A stretch of DNA of 59,485 nt, the filler included, from Platydemus manokwari (taxonomy: Eukaryota), in NCBI GenBank assembly GCA_037951405.1. It is 4 parts of 4 records of this genome, joined end to end, with 100 filler letters (N's around TTAATTAATTAA, not from the genome) between each part and the next. Parts side by side here need not be neighbours in the genome. Positions count along the whole stretch, not along the records: positions 15,281 to 28,710 come from JBBMOY011732508.1; 3 more parts are not named here. One strand, given 5' to 3'. This document shows, one piece after another, positions 15,281 through 28,710 of the stretch (position 1 is the first letter of the stretch; the number at the start of each line of letters is the position of its first letter). A model generated the notes under the pieces. That model searched no databases, was not told the DNA's origin, and saw only the letters and a list, made by a program, of their open reading frames with translations. Both the position numbers and the translations under genes were made by a program.

Positions 15281-15427
15281 TTATTTGATTTGGATCAAAT
15301 CTACATTTCATTACAACATCGACAGGTTTCGGATCTATGTATCCAATCTATTAAATAAATATTAAAATACTTATTTTGAGAGAAAACCCAAGTACCTTAT
15401 TCCTGGCACTTCTCAATAATTTCAAAG

Positions 15428-15745
15428 TCACTTTTTTATAAAATAACTAAGATATCATTCCAATTGCTTCTAATGTTAAAAAAGGGGTCCTCGCTAATTT
15501 TCAATTAATTGCATTTGACCTACTTTGACCCGTTTATCAAATAGTTAAATTTTAGTAAATTTTAAAAATCCTATGCATATATTATTTGATTCTAAATAAC
15601 TAAAATTTTACTCAAGTGCTAAAATATAAAATTCAAAATGTTATTAAAGAATTTAATTAAATAATCTATATAGATTTTTGCAATACACTCCAATATTTTA
15701 AAATTTTATTCTAGGACCCTTTTTTTAACTTACGCCAAAATTTGG
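15428..15745 (-). repeat. Second, inverted copy of the 9905-10235 MITE-like repeat
   Basis: Colinear reverse-complement similarity over about 320 bp, read by eye. Confidence 0.75.
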
Positions 15746-16436
15746 TTAAACTGGGTCCAATACAAATAAATTATTAAACATTGAAAAGTCATTAGATATC
15801 ATAAGAACGATTAACAATGAATTCATTAAAATGTAAATCGTAAAATAAAGCAATAAACTTCTTTTGAAGGAATTTCCAAAATTTAAATTAATTTTCAGAA
15901 TAATTAACTAATAGCAATAAAAATACAATTTTTGCTTGTTGCAATTGTCAAAATACGGGGAGATTTTCTAAAAATTTTTATGTCAAGATTTACAATTTGC
16001 CTCATATTGAATTGTTTTCCCTTTTTATTAATAATTTTTCTATAAATTGAACACTATTTTTGTTTTCAAAATTATTACTTAATATATTTAATTAAGAATG
16101 TATGTTCAACTTAAAGATATCATTTTTAGTTTGATTGGCCATAATGTAAATATATTTAGAAAATCAAATTCATGATTATTCTATTATGGCGGGGTCTGTA
16201 ATCAACATTATCTATAAATCATTATAAATAACGAATTATAATGTATTGATTTTTTTTAATAAAAAGGTGAAACAAATATTAAGATACTTTTCCCTAGTTC
16301 AAAATGTACTCATACAAACATTACAATTAGAGAATGTGAAGTGACTTAAAAGTTGAAAGCATTCCTTTACACTGGCATGGATAGGCATGAAATTTAATAA
16401 GGTTTATTTAAAACGACAAGCAAAAGGCATTTATTA

Positions 16437-16660
16437 TCGATCAACAAAAAGCTATATAAAACATGAATAATATTACAAGAACAATCTTAAGATATAATCG
16501 TAACATCAAATATCTTTATCCAATTTCTCAATAACTAAAAAAATAAATTCCTCGATCAATAAAAAGCTATACAAAAACATGAATAACATTGCAAAAACAA
16601 TCTTAAGATATAATCGTCACATCAAATATCTTTATCTAATTTCTCAACAACTAAAGAATA
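16437..16660. repeat. Tandem duplication (period about 115 bp) of the HAT1 last codons, stop and proximal 3'UTR
   Basis: 16437-16545 and 16552-16660 share tcgatcaa.aaaaagctata.aaaacatgaataa.att.caa.aacaatcttaagatataatcgt.acatcaaatatctttatc.aatttctcaa.aactaaa. Confidence 0.9.
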
Positions 16661-18066
16661 ACATTGTTCCAATCTTTCATATTCCTTTTCAATCAATATA
16701 GATTTATTATCAGTATTCATTTGCACAAATGAATAATTCATGTTAATGAGTTCCTTAGGTTTCTAAACATTAGTTATGAATATAATTAATATAATCATTA
16801 TAAAAAGTACCCCGTATAAATCATCTAATCTCTTGATGACTGTCTGCTTGTATCTCATTACATCAATCGAATTGGATTTATCAATGTATTTGAAGCCTAA
16901 TATTTCATAAACACGCAAAATTTGTTTATTACAGAGCTTCAATTTTCGTTTAACTAAATCTGAAAATGCTTTGTACATTCCTTTTTTCAAGATAGCGGTA
17001 TCAAAATCTGGAAGACTAATTATATTTTTACAATCTATGTAATCTCTTAAAGTTTGAAAAGAATCAGATGGATCTTCAACGGTTATATCCTTAACCAGGA
17101 TATTCGCTTTTACTAAATTATAAAAATTGGTCATTAACCGTTCACCATGTCCCTGCTTTTGAAAAGGTGGAAAGATTAAAACTTGACTTATTCTCTTTCT
17201 TATACTATCAGGATACGCAAAAAAATTGAAAATCGTCATAAATCCAATGGTAGCATATTTGTAATCTTGATTACAATCTTTATACTTTTCATATCTAAAA
17301 CATTTATCAAACTAATTTTAATAAAACTTTCATCTTACATGATAATATATTCCCAACTTTTATCTGTAATATCAATAATTGATGAACCATTAACAAAAAA
17401 CATTGATAAATATTGAAGATTATTGCTATAAGTTTGAAAATCAACAGAATCCAAGTCCTTTTTTGAGACATGATAAATTTCATAAATTTTATCATCTATA
17501 CAAATTCAAAATTCTCAAAATTATTGAAGAAATCAAACTTGATATAAACAGATCAATTAATTTACCAAAACAGGTAAAATTATCATTAACTACGGCATGT
17601 TTAAATGTTTCAACATTGTGTTCGATTTTAAGTTGAGAAAACAAATTCTTCTCAAAATTATATGGCTAAAAGAAATAACTTCAAATAAATAATTAAAAAA
17701 ACTACACGGTTAACCGGAATACATCTCGAATCATTGATCTTATCATCGTAAGAAATATTAACACATGGAGTTAAACGAGAGGCCAATAAATGAATATCAA
17801 TTTGCAGATTTTTATAACCGAAAATTTTTTCACTTAAATACAAAATATTATAAATATATAATAAATAAATTGTACTTTTCGCCAAAAAATTGATGACAAA
17901 ATTCTGGATTTATTTTATTATCATCTTTTTCCATTTCATCAATGTTTCTAACTAAAGTATCCGATAATTACTACAAATTAAAAAAAATAAAGATACTAAA
18001 TCTGAAGTTAATGTGCTTATTAGCTTGACATGTATAATTATCAAATATGGATTCAACTAAATTCAT
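16622..18066 (-). CDS. HAT1: Histone acetyltransferase type B catalytic subunit, 7 exons
   Basis: Exons 18066-17997, 17951-17876, 17832-17715, 17665-17539, 17495-17339, 17294-16811 and 16762-16622, with in-phase GT-AG introns of 43-49 bp. Motifs PEFCHQFFGENEKIFGYKNLQI, YAT.GFMT.FNFFAYPD..R.RISQ.LIFPPFQKQGHG (acetyl-CoA motif A) and DITVEDPS..FQ.LRD..D are all HAT1 hallmarks. Confidence 0.95.
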
Positions 18067-19674
18067 TTTTTTAATATAAATGCCAGATAATAATTATTAA
18101 AACACAGTTTTTATGTATTTAATAATTTATATTTAAAAAACTTTGAAATATGATTAAAATCTGATTTAATTACTACCTGAATATTTTGATAAATTTATTT
18201 TAGAAATTATTTTTTAAATCCTAAATTTAAACAGTATATATGAAAACGTTAATTCAGCCTAATCCGTTAGTTAAAATTTAATTTTTTAAAGTTAAACAAC
18301 AAAAAATGGATCATTCAAAAATGTCAATTCATTTAAAAATTTTCACAGATTTGACAATATCAATAGAAAACTTTCTATTCTTACTTTATATGGCAAATAT
18401 TTAAATTTAACTTTCTTTAAATTAAGGTTTAGTACATATTAATAATTGCTTGACTAATGCATACGTTAAATAAAGATACTTAAAAAAAATTCAATTTCCT
18501 TTTCTTTGTTTATATCTGATAAACTTCTAATTATACTATGTGGATTCTTGGAATCTAAAATGTTACAAAGTTAGAGATAAATAATCTTCTTTTTCTCAAA
18601 ACTCTCAATTTCAGAATATCAAAAGATATCTTTTGAAACCCAACCATATCAAAGCCTGGGATGGTCTCACATGAAGCCACAATCAAAGTCCAACTAGAAT
18701 GGAGTCATGTTGGAATTAAAGAATAAATCCCATATTAATCGATTATTTCGATATTTCTGACTTGCATATTTTTGACATTAATCTAAAATTATTTGGTTAT
18801 CTATTATTTTACAGATTTATTTATTTTTTGAAGAATTCTAATAAACAAATAGTGCTTAAATTTCGTAATATTGTGTATTTTGTACAAAATTTATCGGTAA
18901 AACTGAAATATATAATTTCGCCATAGAAAATCAAATAAAATCCAATTTTGAAACTCAAATAAGTGTTGAGTAGATCACAAATCTATTAAAATGCTCAGAA
19001 GAACAAAGGAAAGAACCCTAAAAAGGGTCTATACACACGGACCGGGTAAGCACACGTGCCGTTATCTAATCACATTTCTTCTAATATTATTCCATAATTA
19101 GAAGCCGTGAATTGACTCTCACAAATTCAAATATACCCAATGACACGAGAGATGCGAGAAAATTTCAAGTATATCGATTAAGGAACAAATTCAGCAAATG
19201 AAAAACTAAGGTTCTCGATATCAAGTAGACACACTCGATAGGTCTATACAAGTAATTGAGTTTCAAGAATATCCCCCAGTCTTTATTGGTTAGTAACTCG
19301 AGTACTTTTGATTACTTTCCATTCTGTTGCTGACTTTCGGGCGCTGACTCCATTTTGATATACTATTGTGATTGTGAAAAGATGCATTGCAGTCATTAAG
19401 ATTTTGATTGTGGAATTTTGGTTAATACATTTTAGATCTAAATCATTGATTAAAATACCCAACATAAAATAAAAAATAACAACCAAATTATTAATTCATT
19501 TAGCAAATAAGTGAATTTATTTTTAATTTCAACCAGAAAATTTAGAGATTATTAATATAAATAAATAGTGTTGGGTTTTAAGTGCTGGTTGTTCGAATCT
19601 GTAATTATTTAAATTATTTAATTAGAAATTATTTACATAATTTCAGATTTTTAGAAAATATGGTATTTTGAAAC

Positions 19675-19787
19675 AATGCCTTGAGACACATATGTCCCTG
19701 CAGTAGTTTATTGTGAATATTTTTCGCATCAGTAATTTGTGACTATTCTCTGGGACTTATATATCCCCGCAGTATTGAAAGGGTTAA
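19675..19787 (-). mobile_element. piggyBac-like transposon terminus (one end only)
   Basis: The minus strand reads TTAA|CCCTTTCAATACTGCGGGGATATATAAGTCCC, a TTAA target followed by a CCC terminus. A second subterminal near-palindrome GAGACACATATGTCCC lies at about 19683-19698. No partner end found. Confidence 0.5.
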
Positions 19788-20047
19788 TGTTAAAATCCCT
19801 TCTTTTTCACATATACTGTCTGCCTCTTAAACTTTAACTAAAATTCAATCCGAGTTTTTACATTGTAGATTTGCTGTATTTGTATTATTTACATTATGCC
19901 CTTTAAAACTGAGTTTGATTTTGAAATAATTTTATTAGTGAAAGATAAATTAATATAAATAAAGTTTTATATATCATAAATTAAAGTTATGTTGTACTCG
20001 TTACCAATGGTGAGAAGGATTATTATATTTTAAAATTTTAATTCGAA

Positions 20048-21007
20048 ATGAATTCCAATATAGATCTCAAAGTAAGATAAATTTGAAAATTAATGATATC
20101 AGAATTAATGAATTTTATACTTATTAAGTCATCGAATATATGATTAGAAAAACTTATCAAATATATCAAAACTTATACATTTTTTCAGATATTTCTGTTA
20201 ATTTAACATTATAACGTGTATTTTATAAGCCTTTTAGAATTTGGAAAATTCCAAAATTTATCATCAGTGGAGATTTTGCTAAGTCTCCAGATGAAACAAA
20301 AGAAAAAAGTAAGACAATTATAAATTTAAAAACTTATAAAATCAAAGATAAACAACCGAATATAACCCAAGAAAATCGGTACTTTATTGGAACTAATCAA
20401 AATCAAATAATTGAAAGAAAATTAGTAACAAATATTTATATATAACACAATAAATGTCATGTTAAGAACGTCCAAGAATCATCTGTAGATAGAATACTGT
20501 CTTTCGCAAATTCAACAGAAAGAAAATCAATTCTGAAATTTTTTTCAATTTCCGACTTAAAATTTACCAAATGTTCGCTGAGACAAGCATTGATGCCAGA
20601 AACCGAGAACAGAATACGTAATTGGTTAAAATCAACAAACCTAACCGGTTAGAAACACGACTGTAACAACGGATTTATTTATTATTAGAAAAATCGATAG
20701 CAATAAATTTTTTCCAAACTGTGATGAAAAACGAAAACTTGTATTCGGATGATAAATATTTCATTCAAAGTATTTTACAGACAATATATAAGTATGTTTA
20801 TACTTTTTTATGCTTTAAAAAAGTAAAAAATAAAATTAATTCAGTGACGAAGATTACTGGATAAAAGACAATACTCATCAAAATGGTGAGACCAAATTGA
20901 AATTCTTAAATCTTCACAAACCGGAAACAAGACGCCAACGTTGGATGTTCACTTCATGGAATCATTTACCGACATATAAACAAAAAGCTTTAAATAATTT
21001 TAGCTGA
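20048..21007 (+). CDS. Uncharacterised protein, about 221 aa, 5 exons (not in the ORF track)
   Basis: Exons 20048-20071, 20230-20424, 20467-20647, 20689-20791 and 20845-21007 total 666 nt with no internal stop. The GT-AG introns are 158, 42, 41 and 53 bp and phase-compatible. AATAAA lies at 21044. Exon 1 and intron 1 are less certain than exons 2-5. Confidence 0.8.
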
Positions 21008-21167
21008 AACACAAACGGAAAACAATGATACAACTTGTTTATCAATAAACAATTGTTTTATTAGTGACATCAAATATTATAAAACACAAATTTTAAATAA
21101 TAAAGCAAAATATAATCATTCAAAAAATAATATTCAAGAATAATTGCTATTGTCGATAAAGACAACC

Positions 21168-24100
21168 TTAATAGAATATAGGCTGTAATTTCTTCTTTAT
21201 ACAAACTCTACATCTACTAAGTTCTTTGTAGACATTTTGATTCTTCTCGTCTTCAGCTTTAATGTATTTGCCAGCTGGAACCTCAAATTGCTTGTCTACG
21301 TGTCTCAAGAAATACGACTTAGCGTCATGCCAATGATTACACCGATCCATTCCGTTATTGCATTCTAACATTGGCGAAAAGCGGAAATATGGTAAGCAGC
21401 TGCCAGGAGATGACAAACTTTGACCACCACCATTTCCACCGGTAGTATGCTTAATAAAATAATTTTATAATTACAATTTTATAAAAATTATAAAATTACC
21501 ATAACAAAACTATATCCGCTCCACAATTCAGTCCATTCATCGGGACAAACAACATCACTGATATTATTGGTTTGAGAATGAAATGCGTAGGGTTCTGTTG
21601 GACTTTCACAAGTGACACACCTTGCAATGTACTTTTCAACATTTTGGACTTCAATCATATCACCTGTTACCGGAGCTAATGAAGCAAGCCAGTAAGATTT
21701 GTCAGCTCTTATTTTCTGCTTGCAACTTCCATCTCTTGAACATTGTTGGAATGGCATAATGTTAAAATAGTTTAAACAAGAACTATGAGTTCCAAGATTC
21801 ATTACATTAACTTCATGATTTCCACTGGCCATTACAAAACTGTATCCTTCATAAATTTTGTTTGAACCAATCGGACAAACAAGTTTATCAACTCTATTTT
21901 GATAATGCCTAGTAAACAAAAATGTACTTTCTAAAGCTTGTCCCTGTTGACCTTGTTCTCCCATTTCACCCTTAGGGCCTGTAGGACCCTTATCACCCTT
22001 TTTTCCAGGCAATCCTCTAGGTCCAGAAGGTCCAATTTTACCTTTATCACCAACTTCACCGGGTTCTTGGCCTTTATCACCTACTAAACCTTGATCACCT
22101 TTATAACCCTTAGGTCCCCTAACAGCTGGTTCTCCTATATCTCCCTTAAGGCCCTGTTTACCAGGAATGCCAATATCTCCAATATCACCAATATTGCCCT
22201 TTTTATCTTCACCTTTTAATCCTCTTAATCCTTTTAGGCCTGTCAAACCTATATCTCCCACACTACCTTTGTCTCCTAAAATTCCTGTTATACCGATTTC
22301 ACCTTTTTGTCCTATAATTCCTTTTTCACCAATAAAACCCTGATCACCTTGAAATCCTTTATTGCCTTTAATTCCTTTCTCACCAAGGAAACCCTTAACG
22401 CCTTTAGAACCTGGTAATCCAATTGCTCCATTTTCACCTTTATCTCCGGATAGGCCTTTTTCTCCTTTTTCACCTTTTTTACCCGATTCGCCGTTTTCAC
22501 CGGTTTCACCTGATTCCCCTTTGGGACCTGCAAAAAAGGTTTGTTAGAAAAACTAGGAAATGAATAATGAACCTTGTTTTCCTTCCCGTCCTTTGTCTCC
22601 AATACCACCATCAGGTCCATTTAATCCATTTCCTGGTAAACCCTTGTCTCCAACTCTTCCCATTTTACCAGGAAGCCCTTAATATATAATTAATATATTA
22701 TTATTATTATTATATCTAATCATACCTTCCAATCCTTTTTCACCTTTGGCTCCTACTAATCCTGGTTCTCCCATTTCACCCCTTTCTCCAGATCGGCCTT
22801 GGACACATTTACCCGGTACACCCTTTTCACCCTTTGGTCCGACTTGACCATTTTCTCCTTCACTTCCAATTTCACCTTCTATGCCGGATTGCCCTTTATC
22901 TCCTTTGTCCCCCATAATTCCTATATTTTAATTCAAAAAATGATATTAATAATAGATATTAATAACCTTGTATTCCTTGAGGGCCGATGTCACCCTTTTG
23001 ACCACTTTCTCCTTTAAGACCTATGCTTCCTTTTTCTCCCTTTTCTCCTAGTTTACCCTCCGAACCAGTAATTCCTAAATTAACAAGTTAATAACTAGTA
23101 GATAATAGTAATATTTTTTAAATACCCTTATTGCCCTTTTCACCTCTATCACCTGGCAAACCTGTTTCACCTGGTGGACCATTATTACCAGGCTTACCAG
23201 TCTCTCCTTTCAATGATTGACCTTTCTTTCCCTTATCACCATTTAAACCCATATCACCTTTAGGTCCATTTTCTCCAACTGGTCCCATTTCTCCTTTTTG
23301 GCCGTTTTGACCCTTTTTCCCTTTTTTACCAGTATTTCCCTTTTCTCCTTGTTTTCCTTTATCCCCCTTTTCAAAAATTTGAAATTATACTATTATCAAA
23401 AACTATTACTCTAGCACCGACATCTCCAATTGGACCTTTTTGACCTATGGTTCCATCTTGTCCCTTATCTCCATCTAAACCCTTGGAACCTTTTTCACCA
23501 AACTCACCCTTATCACCAATCATGCCTTTTTCTCCAATTGTTGTGTCACCTGGTTCACCTTTGTCACCTCTCATACCAGGAATTCCACTTTCTCCTTTTT
23601 TACCATGTGAACCTGGTAACCCTTGGTTTCCAATGTCTCCTTTGGAACCAACAAGGCTTTCACCCTTACCTCCTTTATCTCCTTTAATGCCTTGATCACC
23701 CCCAACACCATTAATACCTGTAACATAATATTAGGTATTAAAATAAAAGAAAAATATCACCTTGATCTCCTTTGAATCCCTTAATTCCTTTTGACCCAGT
23801 ATCACCAACAGGACCTCTTGATCCTAAATAACCTTTATCTCCCCTGTCTCCAACTTCCCCAATTTCACCCTTAGATCCATTATCACCCTTATCTCCTCTG
23901 ATTCCTTAATTTATCAGTAAAAATAATAAAATAAATAAGTATTGATACCTATTTCACCACTTCTACCAAGTATACCAGGTTCACCTCTTTCTCCAACCTC
24001 TCCTTGAGATCCTTTATTGCCAATATCACCGTTCGCACCAAAATCACCTCTATCACCAAAATCCCCTCTACCAGTGCATTCACCATTATCCCCCACCTGC

Positions 24101-27100
24101 CCAATCGAACCCTTTAGACCTTTAATATTTATTATAGTTTAGTAACAATATTTAATATTAATACCATCAACACCAATTTCACCCTTTTGACCCTTGTCAC
24201 CCTTTATTGATTGATCACCTTCTAATCCAGGTTTTCCAGTATCACCTTTTGATCCTTTTGAACCTTTAACTCCCATATGTCCTACATATCCCCTGTCACC
24301 AGGCATACCTTTATCCCCAATCTCGCCAACATCGCCTTCAACACCAATTGAGCCTGCAGAACCTTTTTCACCATTAGGACCAGTAAGACCTTTGATTCCA
24401 CTACCAGGAATGCCAATGGCACCCTTATCACCCTTCATGCCTAAATATTTTTATATGATGATAAAAGTATTAGCAAGAATTTACCGTTTAGTCCGACATC
24501 ACCAATTTCACCTTTAATACCTTTTTCTCCGTAATCACCATTTTCACCATTATTACCTTTTTGACCAATTTTTCCAGGAATTCCAGGTACCCCTATAATA
24601 TATTATAGACTTATTATAGAGAATTAAATAATAAACCTTCATATCCTTTATGACCTTTCGGTCCTTTAGCTCCAGTCTTTCCTGGTTTACCTTTTCTACC
24701 AGGTATTCCATCCATCCCTTTAGAGCCTTTATCACCTTCAATACCTTTTTTTCCAACAGGACCTCTTAGCCCAGTTTCCCCATCATCACCAACATCTCCT
24801 TTAACTAATTTAGTACTAATATATAAATTCTATTTAAATTTCATACTTGTCGAATTAATTAATTTAACAAAATTGACTGTACAATTTCCTGAATCACCCT
24901 TTTCACCCTTTTCTCCTTGGGGTGCTTTCAAGCCTTTGTCACCTTGCAATCCTCTTTCTCCTTGAACTGGATTTGCATCTTTACCTCTTAATCCTTTTTC
25001 CCCAATTTCACCTTTAAATCCCTTAATACCTTTTTCTCCAATTTCACCTTTATTTCCCTATAAATGATTTCATAAATGATTTCATCTATAAAGCAGATAT
25101 TACCATTTTTCCATTATCACCAAATAATCCAGTCTTGCCAATAGCTCCTGTAGAGCCTTTAATGCCTTTATAACCCTCTATACCATGAGGCCCGTTATCA
25201 CCTTTAGAACCTTTGATTGCTGGGGATTTAATAACCATATTATCGCCCTTGTCTCCTTTAGTTCCTTTTAATCCAGGCTCACCTCTGTCACCATTATCAC
25301 CCTATATTAATTCATATATATATATATATATATAGAAATATATTTAATTAAATTACATAGCCGCCATCGAGTCCAATCGCACCATCGTTACCTGGACGCC
25401 CTCTATCACCTCTAGTCCCTGGATTTCCATCACGACCAGATGATCCATCTATTCCTTTTTCACCCTGCTCACCCATGAGTCCTTTATTACCCATTTTGCC
25501 TTTCTGGCAAACCTTACAAGCAGATCCAGGGAAACCTTTCATTCCTTTTGGACCTTGTTTCCCTTGTTTTCCATCCAAGCCATTTAATCCCTTCTCTCCT
25601 TTCGGACCTTTATCACCCGGAGTACCGGTTGTTGGCCGTCCAGAAGGACCCCTCTCTCCCTTAACTCCTTTCGAACCAGAATAACCTAATAAATAAAATA
25701 TTACCTAATATAAAATTTCACATGTAATAACCTTTGTCGCCCTTTTCACCATCATCGCCATCATCGCCCTTAATTCCTTTCACAGTTTTACCTTCTTCTC
25801 CAATATCACCTTCCTCTCCAAAATCTCCCCTAAATCCAATATCTCCTCTCTGACCATCAGAACCCGGTTCACCTAAATAATATTAAAGATACTTTATATT
25901 AAATTATATTCTAATACCAGTTTCCCCCTTTACTCCAACTTCACCTTTCCTGCCAGGTGCACAAGAATCTCCAATATCACCAACTGGCCCACTTGGGCCA
26001 ACAGATCCTTTATAACCCTTATCTCCTTGTTCGCCACGGTAACCTGATAATCCTTGATTGCCTTTATCCCCTTTATCTCCAATTATTCCTTGAGGACCTG
26101 TCATATTACCCACACACGTTCCATTTCCCTTTAATAATTTATATACAGATATTATATATAGATATAATAAAGATTTACCCCTGGTTCTCCAACTTCCCCC
26201 TTATAACCTCTGTTTCCATCTTTTCCGGGTGCTCCTTGAAAACCTTTAGAGCCCAAAGATCCTTTCTGCCCAATTGTTCCATCAGTTCCTCGAACACCCT
26301 ATTAAAAATTAATAGGGTTTCAAATTAATATAAACAAACTTTAGATCCTTTTCTTCCAATTTGGCCTTTGATACCAGGTGCTCCCTACATAAACAATTTA
26401 AATACAAAAACTAAATATCGATAAATTCAAACCCTTATTCCTTGATTACCAGTTTCTCCTTTTATTCCAGGATTACCTATAGTTCCATCAGAACCCTAAT
26501 AATTTAAATAATTATAACACTAATTATGTTGTTAATGTGATTAATAAATATAAAATTATTAACATAAGATTATAATAATAATATTATGAAATAAGTATTT
26601 TACTAACAGGTTCACCAGGTCTACCGATTGGACCCTGCTTTCCTTTATTCCCAAGATGACCTTTTTCACCAATATCACCACGTTGATCAGGTGGTGTTTT
26701 TCCTTGAAGTACTACCAATTTGCAGTCTGTGCCAGACTCACCTTTAAAACCAGGAACACCCTTTTCTCCTTTCTGTGCAAAGGCAGTAGGTTGACTACCG
26801 GGCTCACCAGGAATTCCAACTGGTCCTTCATTTCCTTTATGACCCTAAAAAGTTTTATATTTTCACCAACATTTGTGAAATAGATTACTTTAATTCCTTT
26901 ATCTCCTATCTCGCCATCTTTACCACGTTTTCCTAAAAAACCTTTACTACCTTTTTCGCCGGAATTTCCTTTATCACCGATAAGGCCCTTAATTCTTGTT
27001 TAATATCTGTTTTTTGAATTATGAAATACCTTCATTCCTTTTTCTGGCTGAAAGACATCCCCAGGTTCCCCAATGGTACCTTTTAACCCTTTAACACCTT

Positions 27101-27766
27101 TGTCTCCAAGAATTCCATTTCGACCAGTTAAACCTATATTTCCTGCTTCACCTTTTGTACCATTACACCCAGGTATCCCTAATTCACCCCTGTCACCAAA
27201 TAAACCGATATCACCCTAAAGGTCAAATCATTACATTATTAAATAAAGTTATAAATTTTACTGGGTCACCATGGGAACCGGGTACTCCATAATCTCCAGG
27301 TTCACCCTGAAATGTGTTTCGATATTTAATATACCAATATTAACACAGAAATAACATTACCCTGTCACCTGGTATACCGTCAGCACCATTAATACCACTA
27401 TCACCCATCGTTCCTTGTGGACCAAAAGGACCCATACTTCCTACATATCCTTTAGGACCTCTAGGACCGGGGTTTCCAATCCTGCCATAATCACCCTGGA
27501 AAAATTTAATTATTCAATTCAAATTATAAAATCACTTTAGATCCAGGAATTCCTATACATCGGCATGTATTTTGAGTGCAAATAGTATTACAATTCTTTC
27601 GACCCGTCCATTGCTGCAAGCACACATTATTTCATGTATCAATTTTAAATAAAACTTACGGAATTTGCTATAAATAAAGTACTCAGTACGAACAACCTTT
27701 AAAATTAAAAGAAATTAATTTTATTTTAATATCAAAAGTATACCAAGTCAATTGAATTTTATTCAT
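21168..27766 (-). CDS. Collagen type IV alpha chain (alpha2-like NC1), about 28 exons, roughly 1,750 aa
   Basis: ATG at 27766, signal-peptide-like MNKIQLTWLFVLSTLFIANS (exons 27766-27744, 27696-27660) and Cys-rich 7S start CNTICTQNTCRC (27613-27536). A long interrupted Gly-X-Y domain is split by mostly 40-65 bp introns. The C-terminal NC1 has 12 Cys (TRHYQ..CPIG..YEGYSF; DKSYWL; RCVTCE; GGGQSLSSPGSCL; SRCRVC), an intron at 21450-21499 and a stop at 21170-21168. DKSYWL and SLAPV resemble alpha2-type chains. Confidence 0.97.
25315..25333. repeat. (AT)n microsatellite in a collagen intron
   Basis: An atatatat run of about 9 units is directly visible. Confidence 0.9.
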
Positions 27767-28710
27767 TATATTGAATATTTTGTTGATTCACTAATGTAAT
27801 AGATCTCCAGCAATGAAACTGAAAAAATTCCAATCAAATTCAAAATTAAAATAAGAATTACAATCTTCTAATTCCTATTGATGATAAATAAAATTGGGAA
27901 TTCACTGTTTATATATGAATGATTTTCAGTGTGTGAAATTATTAATTTCAATATCAAGAGGTATGTAATAAAAATCGATGATGTGATTATTTTCCGATTG
28001 GTTTATCAGTTATACATCGATATTAGGATGACTAAAATCGTTGTGCTTGTAAATTTATGGGGATAATTATATGTAGGTGCTTAATATTACAGTTACGTGT
28101 GCATTAAAGATTTTAATTGAGATTTCTATATTTTTCGATTTCTAATAGTATTATTGTTAATTTTACAATTTTTTAATTTTAATTTTTTTATTTACTGTGT
28201 AATAGTAAAAATATCGAAATTATCATTTTAAAATAATCAAATTTCCATTCTAAATTAAATATTTTAATTATTATGAATAATATAATTATTAGTCATCACA
28301 TTCACTAATTAATGAAAATTGACTCCACTGTACTTTCAATAGGTGGTTAATTTCTTTTGAATTAAACGTTAAATCAATGCAATTAATACCTACTTAATAT
28401 TTAGTAAAAATTGTTAAATCTTACTTTCCTTTGGACTTTTTAAATTTTAATAGAATCTTAAATAAATCCAAGTTAAATAATCTATATATTGTACAAATAC
28501 TATCTTTAAGCTACATATAATAATTACTATTTGCTTGTGGTTTTATATGTTGATAATGATATTTTTAATTATTAAAATGTTGATGAGTATCTACAAAATT
28601 CAAAATTATAGAATTATCAAATTTAACCATGGTTATTTCTTGAAATAATAAGTAAAAGGGAAGTTTATGACTCTTAAGAATAATCTACTATAAATACTAG
28701 GTTTTTTCTT

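Follow-up and report, generated by a model that had tools for sequence, protein, structure and literature searches.

Two described classes of genes come closest to the locus reported here. Animal orphan genes have no detectable homologue or domain; their products are short, basic and hydrophilic, and the genes consist of few short exons, are present in single copy and lie in an ordinary gene neighbourhood. De novo genes and proto-genes have a composition near that of the surrounding non-coding DNA, lack periodicity of the bases over the codon positions and have no relatives. These properties are shared by a candidate gene on the plus strand of a genomic piece of Platydemus manokwari (JBBMOY011732508.1, positions 15281-28710), which has a GC content of ~25%. 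All positions count along the window, that is, the whole stretch of DNA that was analysed (59,485 nucleotides). Our preferred reading, to which we assign a probability of roughly 0.6, is that the candidate is a real, lineage-restricted gene. A preliminary description of this DNA had called it the strongest novelty candidate in the window; that ranking was overstated, and at best we are dealing with an uncharacterised orphan gene.

Locus and neighbouring genes

The candidate is situated between a HAT1 gene and a type IV collagen gene. The HAT1 gene (histone acetyltransferase type B; ~16509-18063, minus strand, introns of 40-48 bp) is divergent to the candidate at a distance of ~2 kb, and the open reading frame at 16766-17239 on the minus strand was matched by Pfam HAT1_C at 2e-15. 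Two further HAT1 exons, proposed by the chain finder at 17495-17339 and 16601-16509, are unlike HAT1 and probably wrong. The collagen gene runs on the minus strand from 21171 to ~27631 and has at least 18 exons, some of the Gly-X-Y type, and no fewer than 11 introns of 44-55 bp; its C-terminal NC1 domain was recognised as two Pfam C4 halves (2e-31 and 1.5e-17). This gene and the candidate are convergent, with 163 bp between the two stop codons (21008-21170). A possible poly(A) signal, AATAAA, is found on the plus strand at 21044..21049, 37 nt past the candidate stop, which is weak evidence in AT-rich DNA. The collagen gene's own AATAAA (21057-21062, minus strand) lies 8 nt beyond that of the candidate, and the two 3' UTRs would thus abut or overlap. 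The placement of the AATAAA is consistent with the gene model, but as evidence it is weak. Rfam returned zero matches across the piece 15281-28710.

Two repeated elements are present upstream. A high-copy dispersed repeat occupies 19506-19907 (core ~19630-19790), with ~2000 copies as judged from a summed contig depth of up to 28,640 versus 13-18 in the flanks; it is the site of many contig ends and branches and lies at a distance of just ~250 bp from the proposed start codon, on its upstream side. The second, moderately repeated element (18948-19370, depth 160-350) is delimited by a pair of 19-nt inverted repeats (18948-18966 and 19248-19266). The stretch 19020-19282 is absent from one contig, and at 19157 a variant with an inserted G is seen. 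The element resembles a small non-autonomous, MITE-like transposon.

The candidate itself is single copy. The depth over 20042-21113 was ~13-16, equal to that of the single-copy flanks, whereas an open reading frame of a transposable element would be expected to be multi-copy.

Exon-intron structure of the candidate

The preliminary description had joined five exons into a 221-amino-acid protein that escapes the ORF track. Translation of the exons gave sequences identical to those quoted, the introns are of the GT-AG type at 20071/20230, 20424/20467, 20647/20689 and 20791/20845, and the exons join in phase, so the junctions are compatible with splicing. With the proposed exon 1, the model totals 666 nt, equivalent to 221 codons plus the stop. 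The mechanical ORF list contains a single 47-aa GTG ORF on the plus strand here, and the track thus does miss the gene.

Exon 2 (20230..20424) comprises 65 codons, is Lys-rich (pI 9.9) and lies inside an open stretch at 20215-20442. It is followed by intron 2 (20425..20466; 42 bp, GTAACA..TTAAG), which has one in-frame TAA, and by exon 3 (20467..20647) with 60 codons and one base. Intron 3 (20648..20688; 41 bp, GTTAGA..ATTAG) takes out one stop per joined frame and shifts the frame. Exon 4 (20689..20791) consists of two bases, 33 codons and two bases; intron 4 (20792..20844; 53 bp, GTATGT..TTCAG) separates it from exon 5 (20845..21007), which has one base, 53 codons and a TGA stop at 21005-21007. 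GAA (E) and AAT (N) are the two codons that introns interrupt. The chain finder chose 20844-20890 as the last intron, which scores -14.8 versus -2.6 for 20792-20844. Precisely opposite exon 3, the minus strand has a 63-codon open stretch (20460-20648) that is not part of any chain on that strand.

Exon 2 is without an in-frame ATG, so that an upstream exon is needed and the model rests on a putative one. The tentative exon 1 (20048..20071) has an ATG with A at -3, eight codons (MNSNIDLK) and the donor GTAAGA, and would be joined to exon 2 via the tentative intron 1 (20072..20229; 158 bp, GT..AG). This intron is ~3 times the modal local intron length, and its composition resembles that of intergenic DNA. 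Both features read as first described, but the choice of this exon is arbitrary, as it is one among 26 in-phase solutions with an ATG exon. We take 20048-20071 as the best guess for the first exon, plausible but unproven. A strong-looking, acceptor-like TTTTTTCAG is found at 20188, inside the tentative intron 1.

Length of the open frame compared with chance

On the plus strand, 20215-21004 is covered nearly without gaps by four open stretches that abut one another (76, 68, 65 and 55 codons). In the proposed frame the exons have no stops, whereas their two alternative frames have 19 and 16; the off-frame counts equal the expectation from base composition (8.3% per codon). The longest stop-free chain was then determined by dynamic programming, in which exons had a minimum length of 90 nt and GT-AG introns could span 38-60 bp. 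At the candidate a chain of 660 nt was recovered and, as a positive control, the HAT1 gene was found on the opposite strand. The remaining non-genic DNA of the piece yielded chains of at most 276 nt; on the plus strand upstream of the candidate (17980-20040) the limit was 186 nt, and no chain there was longer than the candidate's.

For comparison, sequences of 1.1 kb were simulated (n = 3000) from a third-order Markov model of the local non-genic DNA. None of the 3000 sequences reached 660 nt, the maximum being 519 nt. When the model was trained on the region itself, which is conservative by design, 3 of 3000 reached 660 nt. The search for tandem or dispersed repeats revealed none that accounts for the open frame. 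The spliced reading frame thus exceeds the length expected by chance.

Introns, splice sites and coding signal

The local reference set consisted of 14 bona fide introns, 11 from the collagen IV gene and three from HAT1. They measure 40-55 bp, start with GT followed by A or T, and end with A or T followed by AG. Introns 2-4 of the candidate (42, 41 and 53 bp) fall within this size class. The donors differ: three of the four candidate donors have G at +5 versus 0 of 14 true local introns. The absence of G at +5 from all 14 local donors is in itself an unusual consensus for an animal. Splice-matrix scores of the candidate were between those of random GT-AG pairs and true introns, with matrices that are biased by the Gly codons of the collagen, and 14-61% of random GT-AG pairs scored equally well. 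In the only public sequencing run that holds the candidate DNA, contigs of genomic depth continue through the introns without a break, which indicates that the run is of genomic DNA. The putative introns have more T and less C than the exons, the direction seen in true introns (p 0.06 for introns 2-4; 4e-4 with intron 1 included).

The base composition by codon position was flat (chi2 6.8 over 211 codons, p 0.34). This equals 3.2 per 100 codons, versus 3.8 for junk ORFs and 14 for both HAT1 and NC1. For calibration we used L001 (ENA ERZ26858887), a related AT-rich eukaryotic contig of 26 kb and 27.6% GC, the genes of which are mostly intron-free: TIP49, a SPATA2-PUB-like gene, 5'-nucleotidase, HAT1 (split by one tiny intron) and NDUFA12. 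In 211-codon windows from four real genes of this contig, chi2 was never below 22.9.

Codon usage was assessed by a phase test with a codon model derived from the 1944 codons of these four L001 genes. Stops were skipped in this model, and the stop-freeness of the candidate therefore adds nothing to the result. The proposed frame was preferred in all four exons, in exon 2 by 0.55 bits per codon; the pooled advantage was 0.54 bits per codon versus 0.88 for HAT1 and 0.65 for NC1. Seventy-seven junk open stretches showed a phase preference of 0.03±0.42, and sets of four junk stretches, when pooled, gave 0.11±0.21, with 2% matching the observed value (pooled p ~0.02). The coding-versus-junk log-likelihood ratio (LLR) was -0.025 per codon for the candidate, ~0.01 for HAT1 and -0.24±0.17 for junk ORFs; simulated A-rich chance chains had an LLR of -0.18±0.07, and 0.9% of these attained the value of the candidate. 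A codon model built from the window alone gave intermediate scores, on too little training data.

Search for relatives

Homology searches were run on single exons. The preliminary description had recognised no family, and our exon-level searches (Pfam, PDB, word, phmmer and metagenome) agree, as none returned a real match. Exon-wise Pfam searches at E<=10 gave zero matches; exon-sized pieces of the neighbouring genes are recognised by Pfam. A word search of exons 3 and 5 against 5.8 billion proteins yielded nothing, and phmmer against the PDB with exons 2, 3 and 5 had no significant match (best E 0.032, a designed protein). In the ESM Atlas, exon 3 had a low recognition score with a best match of 0.76.

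The search of exon 3 with phmmer against 1.84 billion representatives had a single match, P0001, with a summed E-value of 3e-4. This is a 764-aa ORF composed of ~59-aa tandem repeats, evidently a translated satellite. It is 33% identical to exon 3 over 35 residues, and its E-value adds three copies of one repeat unit, which is no evidence of kinship. The metagenome scan with exon 5 also had a sole match, a bacterial contig of 68% GC that shares the seeded peptide KPETRRQRW, and this was rejected. Synteny with L001 via HAT1 was discarded as well, since the neighbours differ and no match to the candidate is present; a 24-residue match inside the 5'-nucleotidase ORF of that contig was gone at E<=0.05.

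For the neighbouring HAT1 exon, the nearest relatives in the databases reach an identity of just 59-61%. The lineage is thus poorly sampled, with no close relative in the searched collections, and the absence of relatives of the candidate is for this reason weak evidence.

Predicted protein

The product of ~221 amino acids would be basic, with 37 Lys and Arg versus 23 Asp and Glu. As stated in the preliminary description, there is no signal peptide or membrane segment: the highest 19-residue Kyte-Doolittle mean was 0.44 and the GRAVY was negative in every exon. A hydrophilic protein without a long hydrophobic segment is probably soluble and intracellular, and from the sequence this is the most likely state of the product. 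The Lys-rich part encoded by exon 2 is probably disordered, and the part encoded by exons 3 and 4 is weakly predicted to be helical. Folds were computed for single exons. From the single sequence of exon 3, AF2 returned four helices (mean pLDDT 60.6), and for exon 5 alone a hairpin and two helices (mean pLDDT also 60.6); at this confidence the models do not qualify for a fold search. The low AF2 confidence and the low ESM Atlas score of exon 3 point to weak protein-likeness, which counts against the gene. The hydrophobic-moment test gave no amphipathic helical signal, in a comparison that had no discriminating power. Judged by its charge, the protein might bind nucleic acid or the cytoskeleton, which we offer as a low-confidence guess.

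Two sequence features had been pointed out earlier. The internal helical repeat found no support: the two segments are no more similar than shuffled sequences (p 0.15 and 0.56), BLASTP does not align exon 3 with exon 4, and there is no DNA repeat beneath the segments. The Trp richness, noted earlier for the C-terminus, is mild: there are five in-frame TGG codons versus 1.1 expected (p 0.005), but three further TGG occur in another frame, so that it is not frame-specific.

Discussion

That the locus is a spliced coding gene, as first proposed, is partly supported, namely by the significant chain, the intron sizes and the phase test, but not by the codon-position composition, and no conserved copy was found. 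A gene is favoured by the significant length of the chain and by a codon signal specific to the frame. What counts against it is that the periodicity is flat, that the donors are atypical and that nothing external supports it. In the reading that we prefer, a single-copy orphan protein-coding gene would lie on the plus strand between HAT1 and collagen IV; three introns of 41-53 bp would separate its four well-defined coding exons (20230-21007), and the start codon would reside in an upstream mini-exon, with 20048-20071 as the best guess. The gene would be transcribed, spliced and translated.

Among the alternatives, the least improbable is that open stretches of non-coding intergenic DNA, which may be transcribed but not translated, form a chain by chance, and we regard this as rather unlikely. 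AT-rich DNA is rich in GT and AG, and neighbouring open stretches are therefore always 'spliceable' on paper; the non-genic DNA of the piece often contains open stretches of 35-70 codons, and 14-61% of random GT-AG pairs match the splice scores of the candidate. The flat codon-position composition, which is well under all real-gene calibration windows, is what such a chain would show, and the lack of relatives in the searches and the genomic nature of the only run with this DNA are in keeping with it. There is also a selection effect, since very many windows were scanned, and among these some events with a frequency of 1 in 1000 per kb are bound to be picked up. However, chance accounts poorly for the 660 nt, given how rarely either set of simulations reached this length, and the phase signal (p ~0.02) and the LLR (0.9% of the A-rich chains) are independent of stop-freeness.

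Part of the same evidence would also fit an ORF that is very young (born de novo, or evolving extremely fast) or a gene relic in decay, with weak or absent selection on the protein. Such an origin would explain a significant open frame alongside a non-coding-like base composition and weak periodicity, and it would be in line with donor sites that are atypical for the genome and with the failure to find relatives, although close relatives are unsampled. We think it improbable, as the pooled phase signal amounts to 60-80% of the level of HAT1 and NC1, the intron model has no internal stops or frameshifts, and a de novo gene with 221 amino acids in four or five exons would be a large one. To read the locus as an intronless ORF that has broken, one would have to assume two or more nonsense mutations as well as two or more frameshifts, since there is no overlap between stretches 2 and 3. 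Slightly less probable again is the more specific case of a recently born multi-exon gene caught early, with a full 221-codon frame, an emerging codon signal, a non-coding-like composition and odd donors. Finally, the exons may be real and the gene model different: it may have a different first exon, further exons upstream or the intron at 20844-20890. The number of alternative ATG exons, the other last intron chosen by the chain finder and the strong-looking acceptor in the tentative intron 1 speak for this; the far lower score of that last intron, the short chains at 17980-20040 and the high-copy repeat that fills 19506-19907 make it very unlikely.

If the preferred reading of a real, lineage-restricted gene is correct, the candidate would add one more uncharacterised lineage-specific protein for a poorly sampled animal lineage, and it would illustrate that ORF-based tracks miss genes with short exons in AT-rich genomes. 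It touches no long-standing question. The combination of a highly significant frame with near-absent base periodicity would make the locus, once transcripts are available, a fair test case in studies of young genes, and, if recently born, it would represent a rare de novo origin, including the acquisition of introns, in a compact animal genome.

The comparison with the described classes can now be completed. Membership of the animal orphan genes requires proof of expression, and in this the candidate, which is known from its DNA sequence alone, differs from them. Compared with de novo genes and proto-genes, the candidate is much longer, has more exons and carries a frame-specific codon signal.
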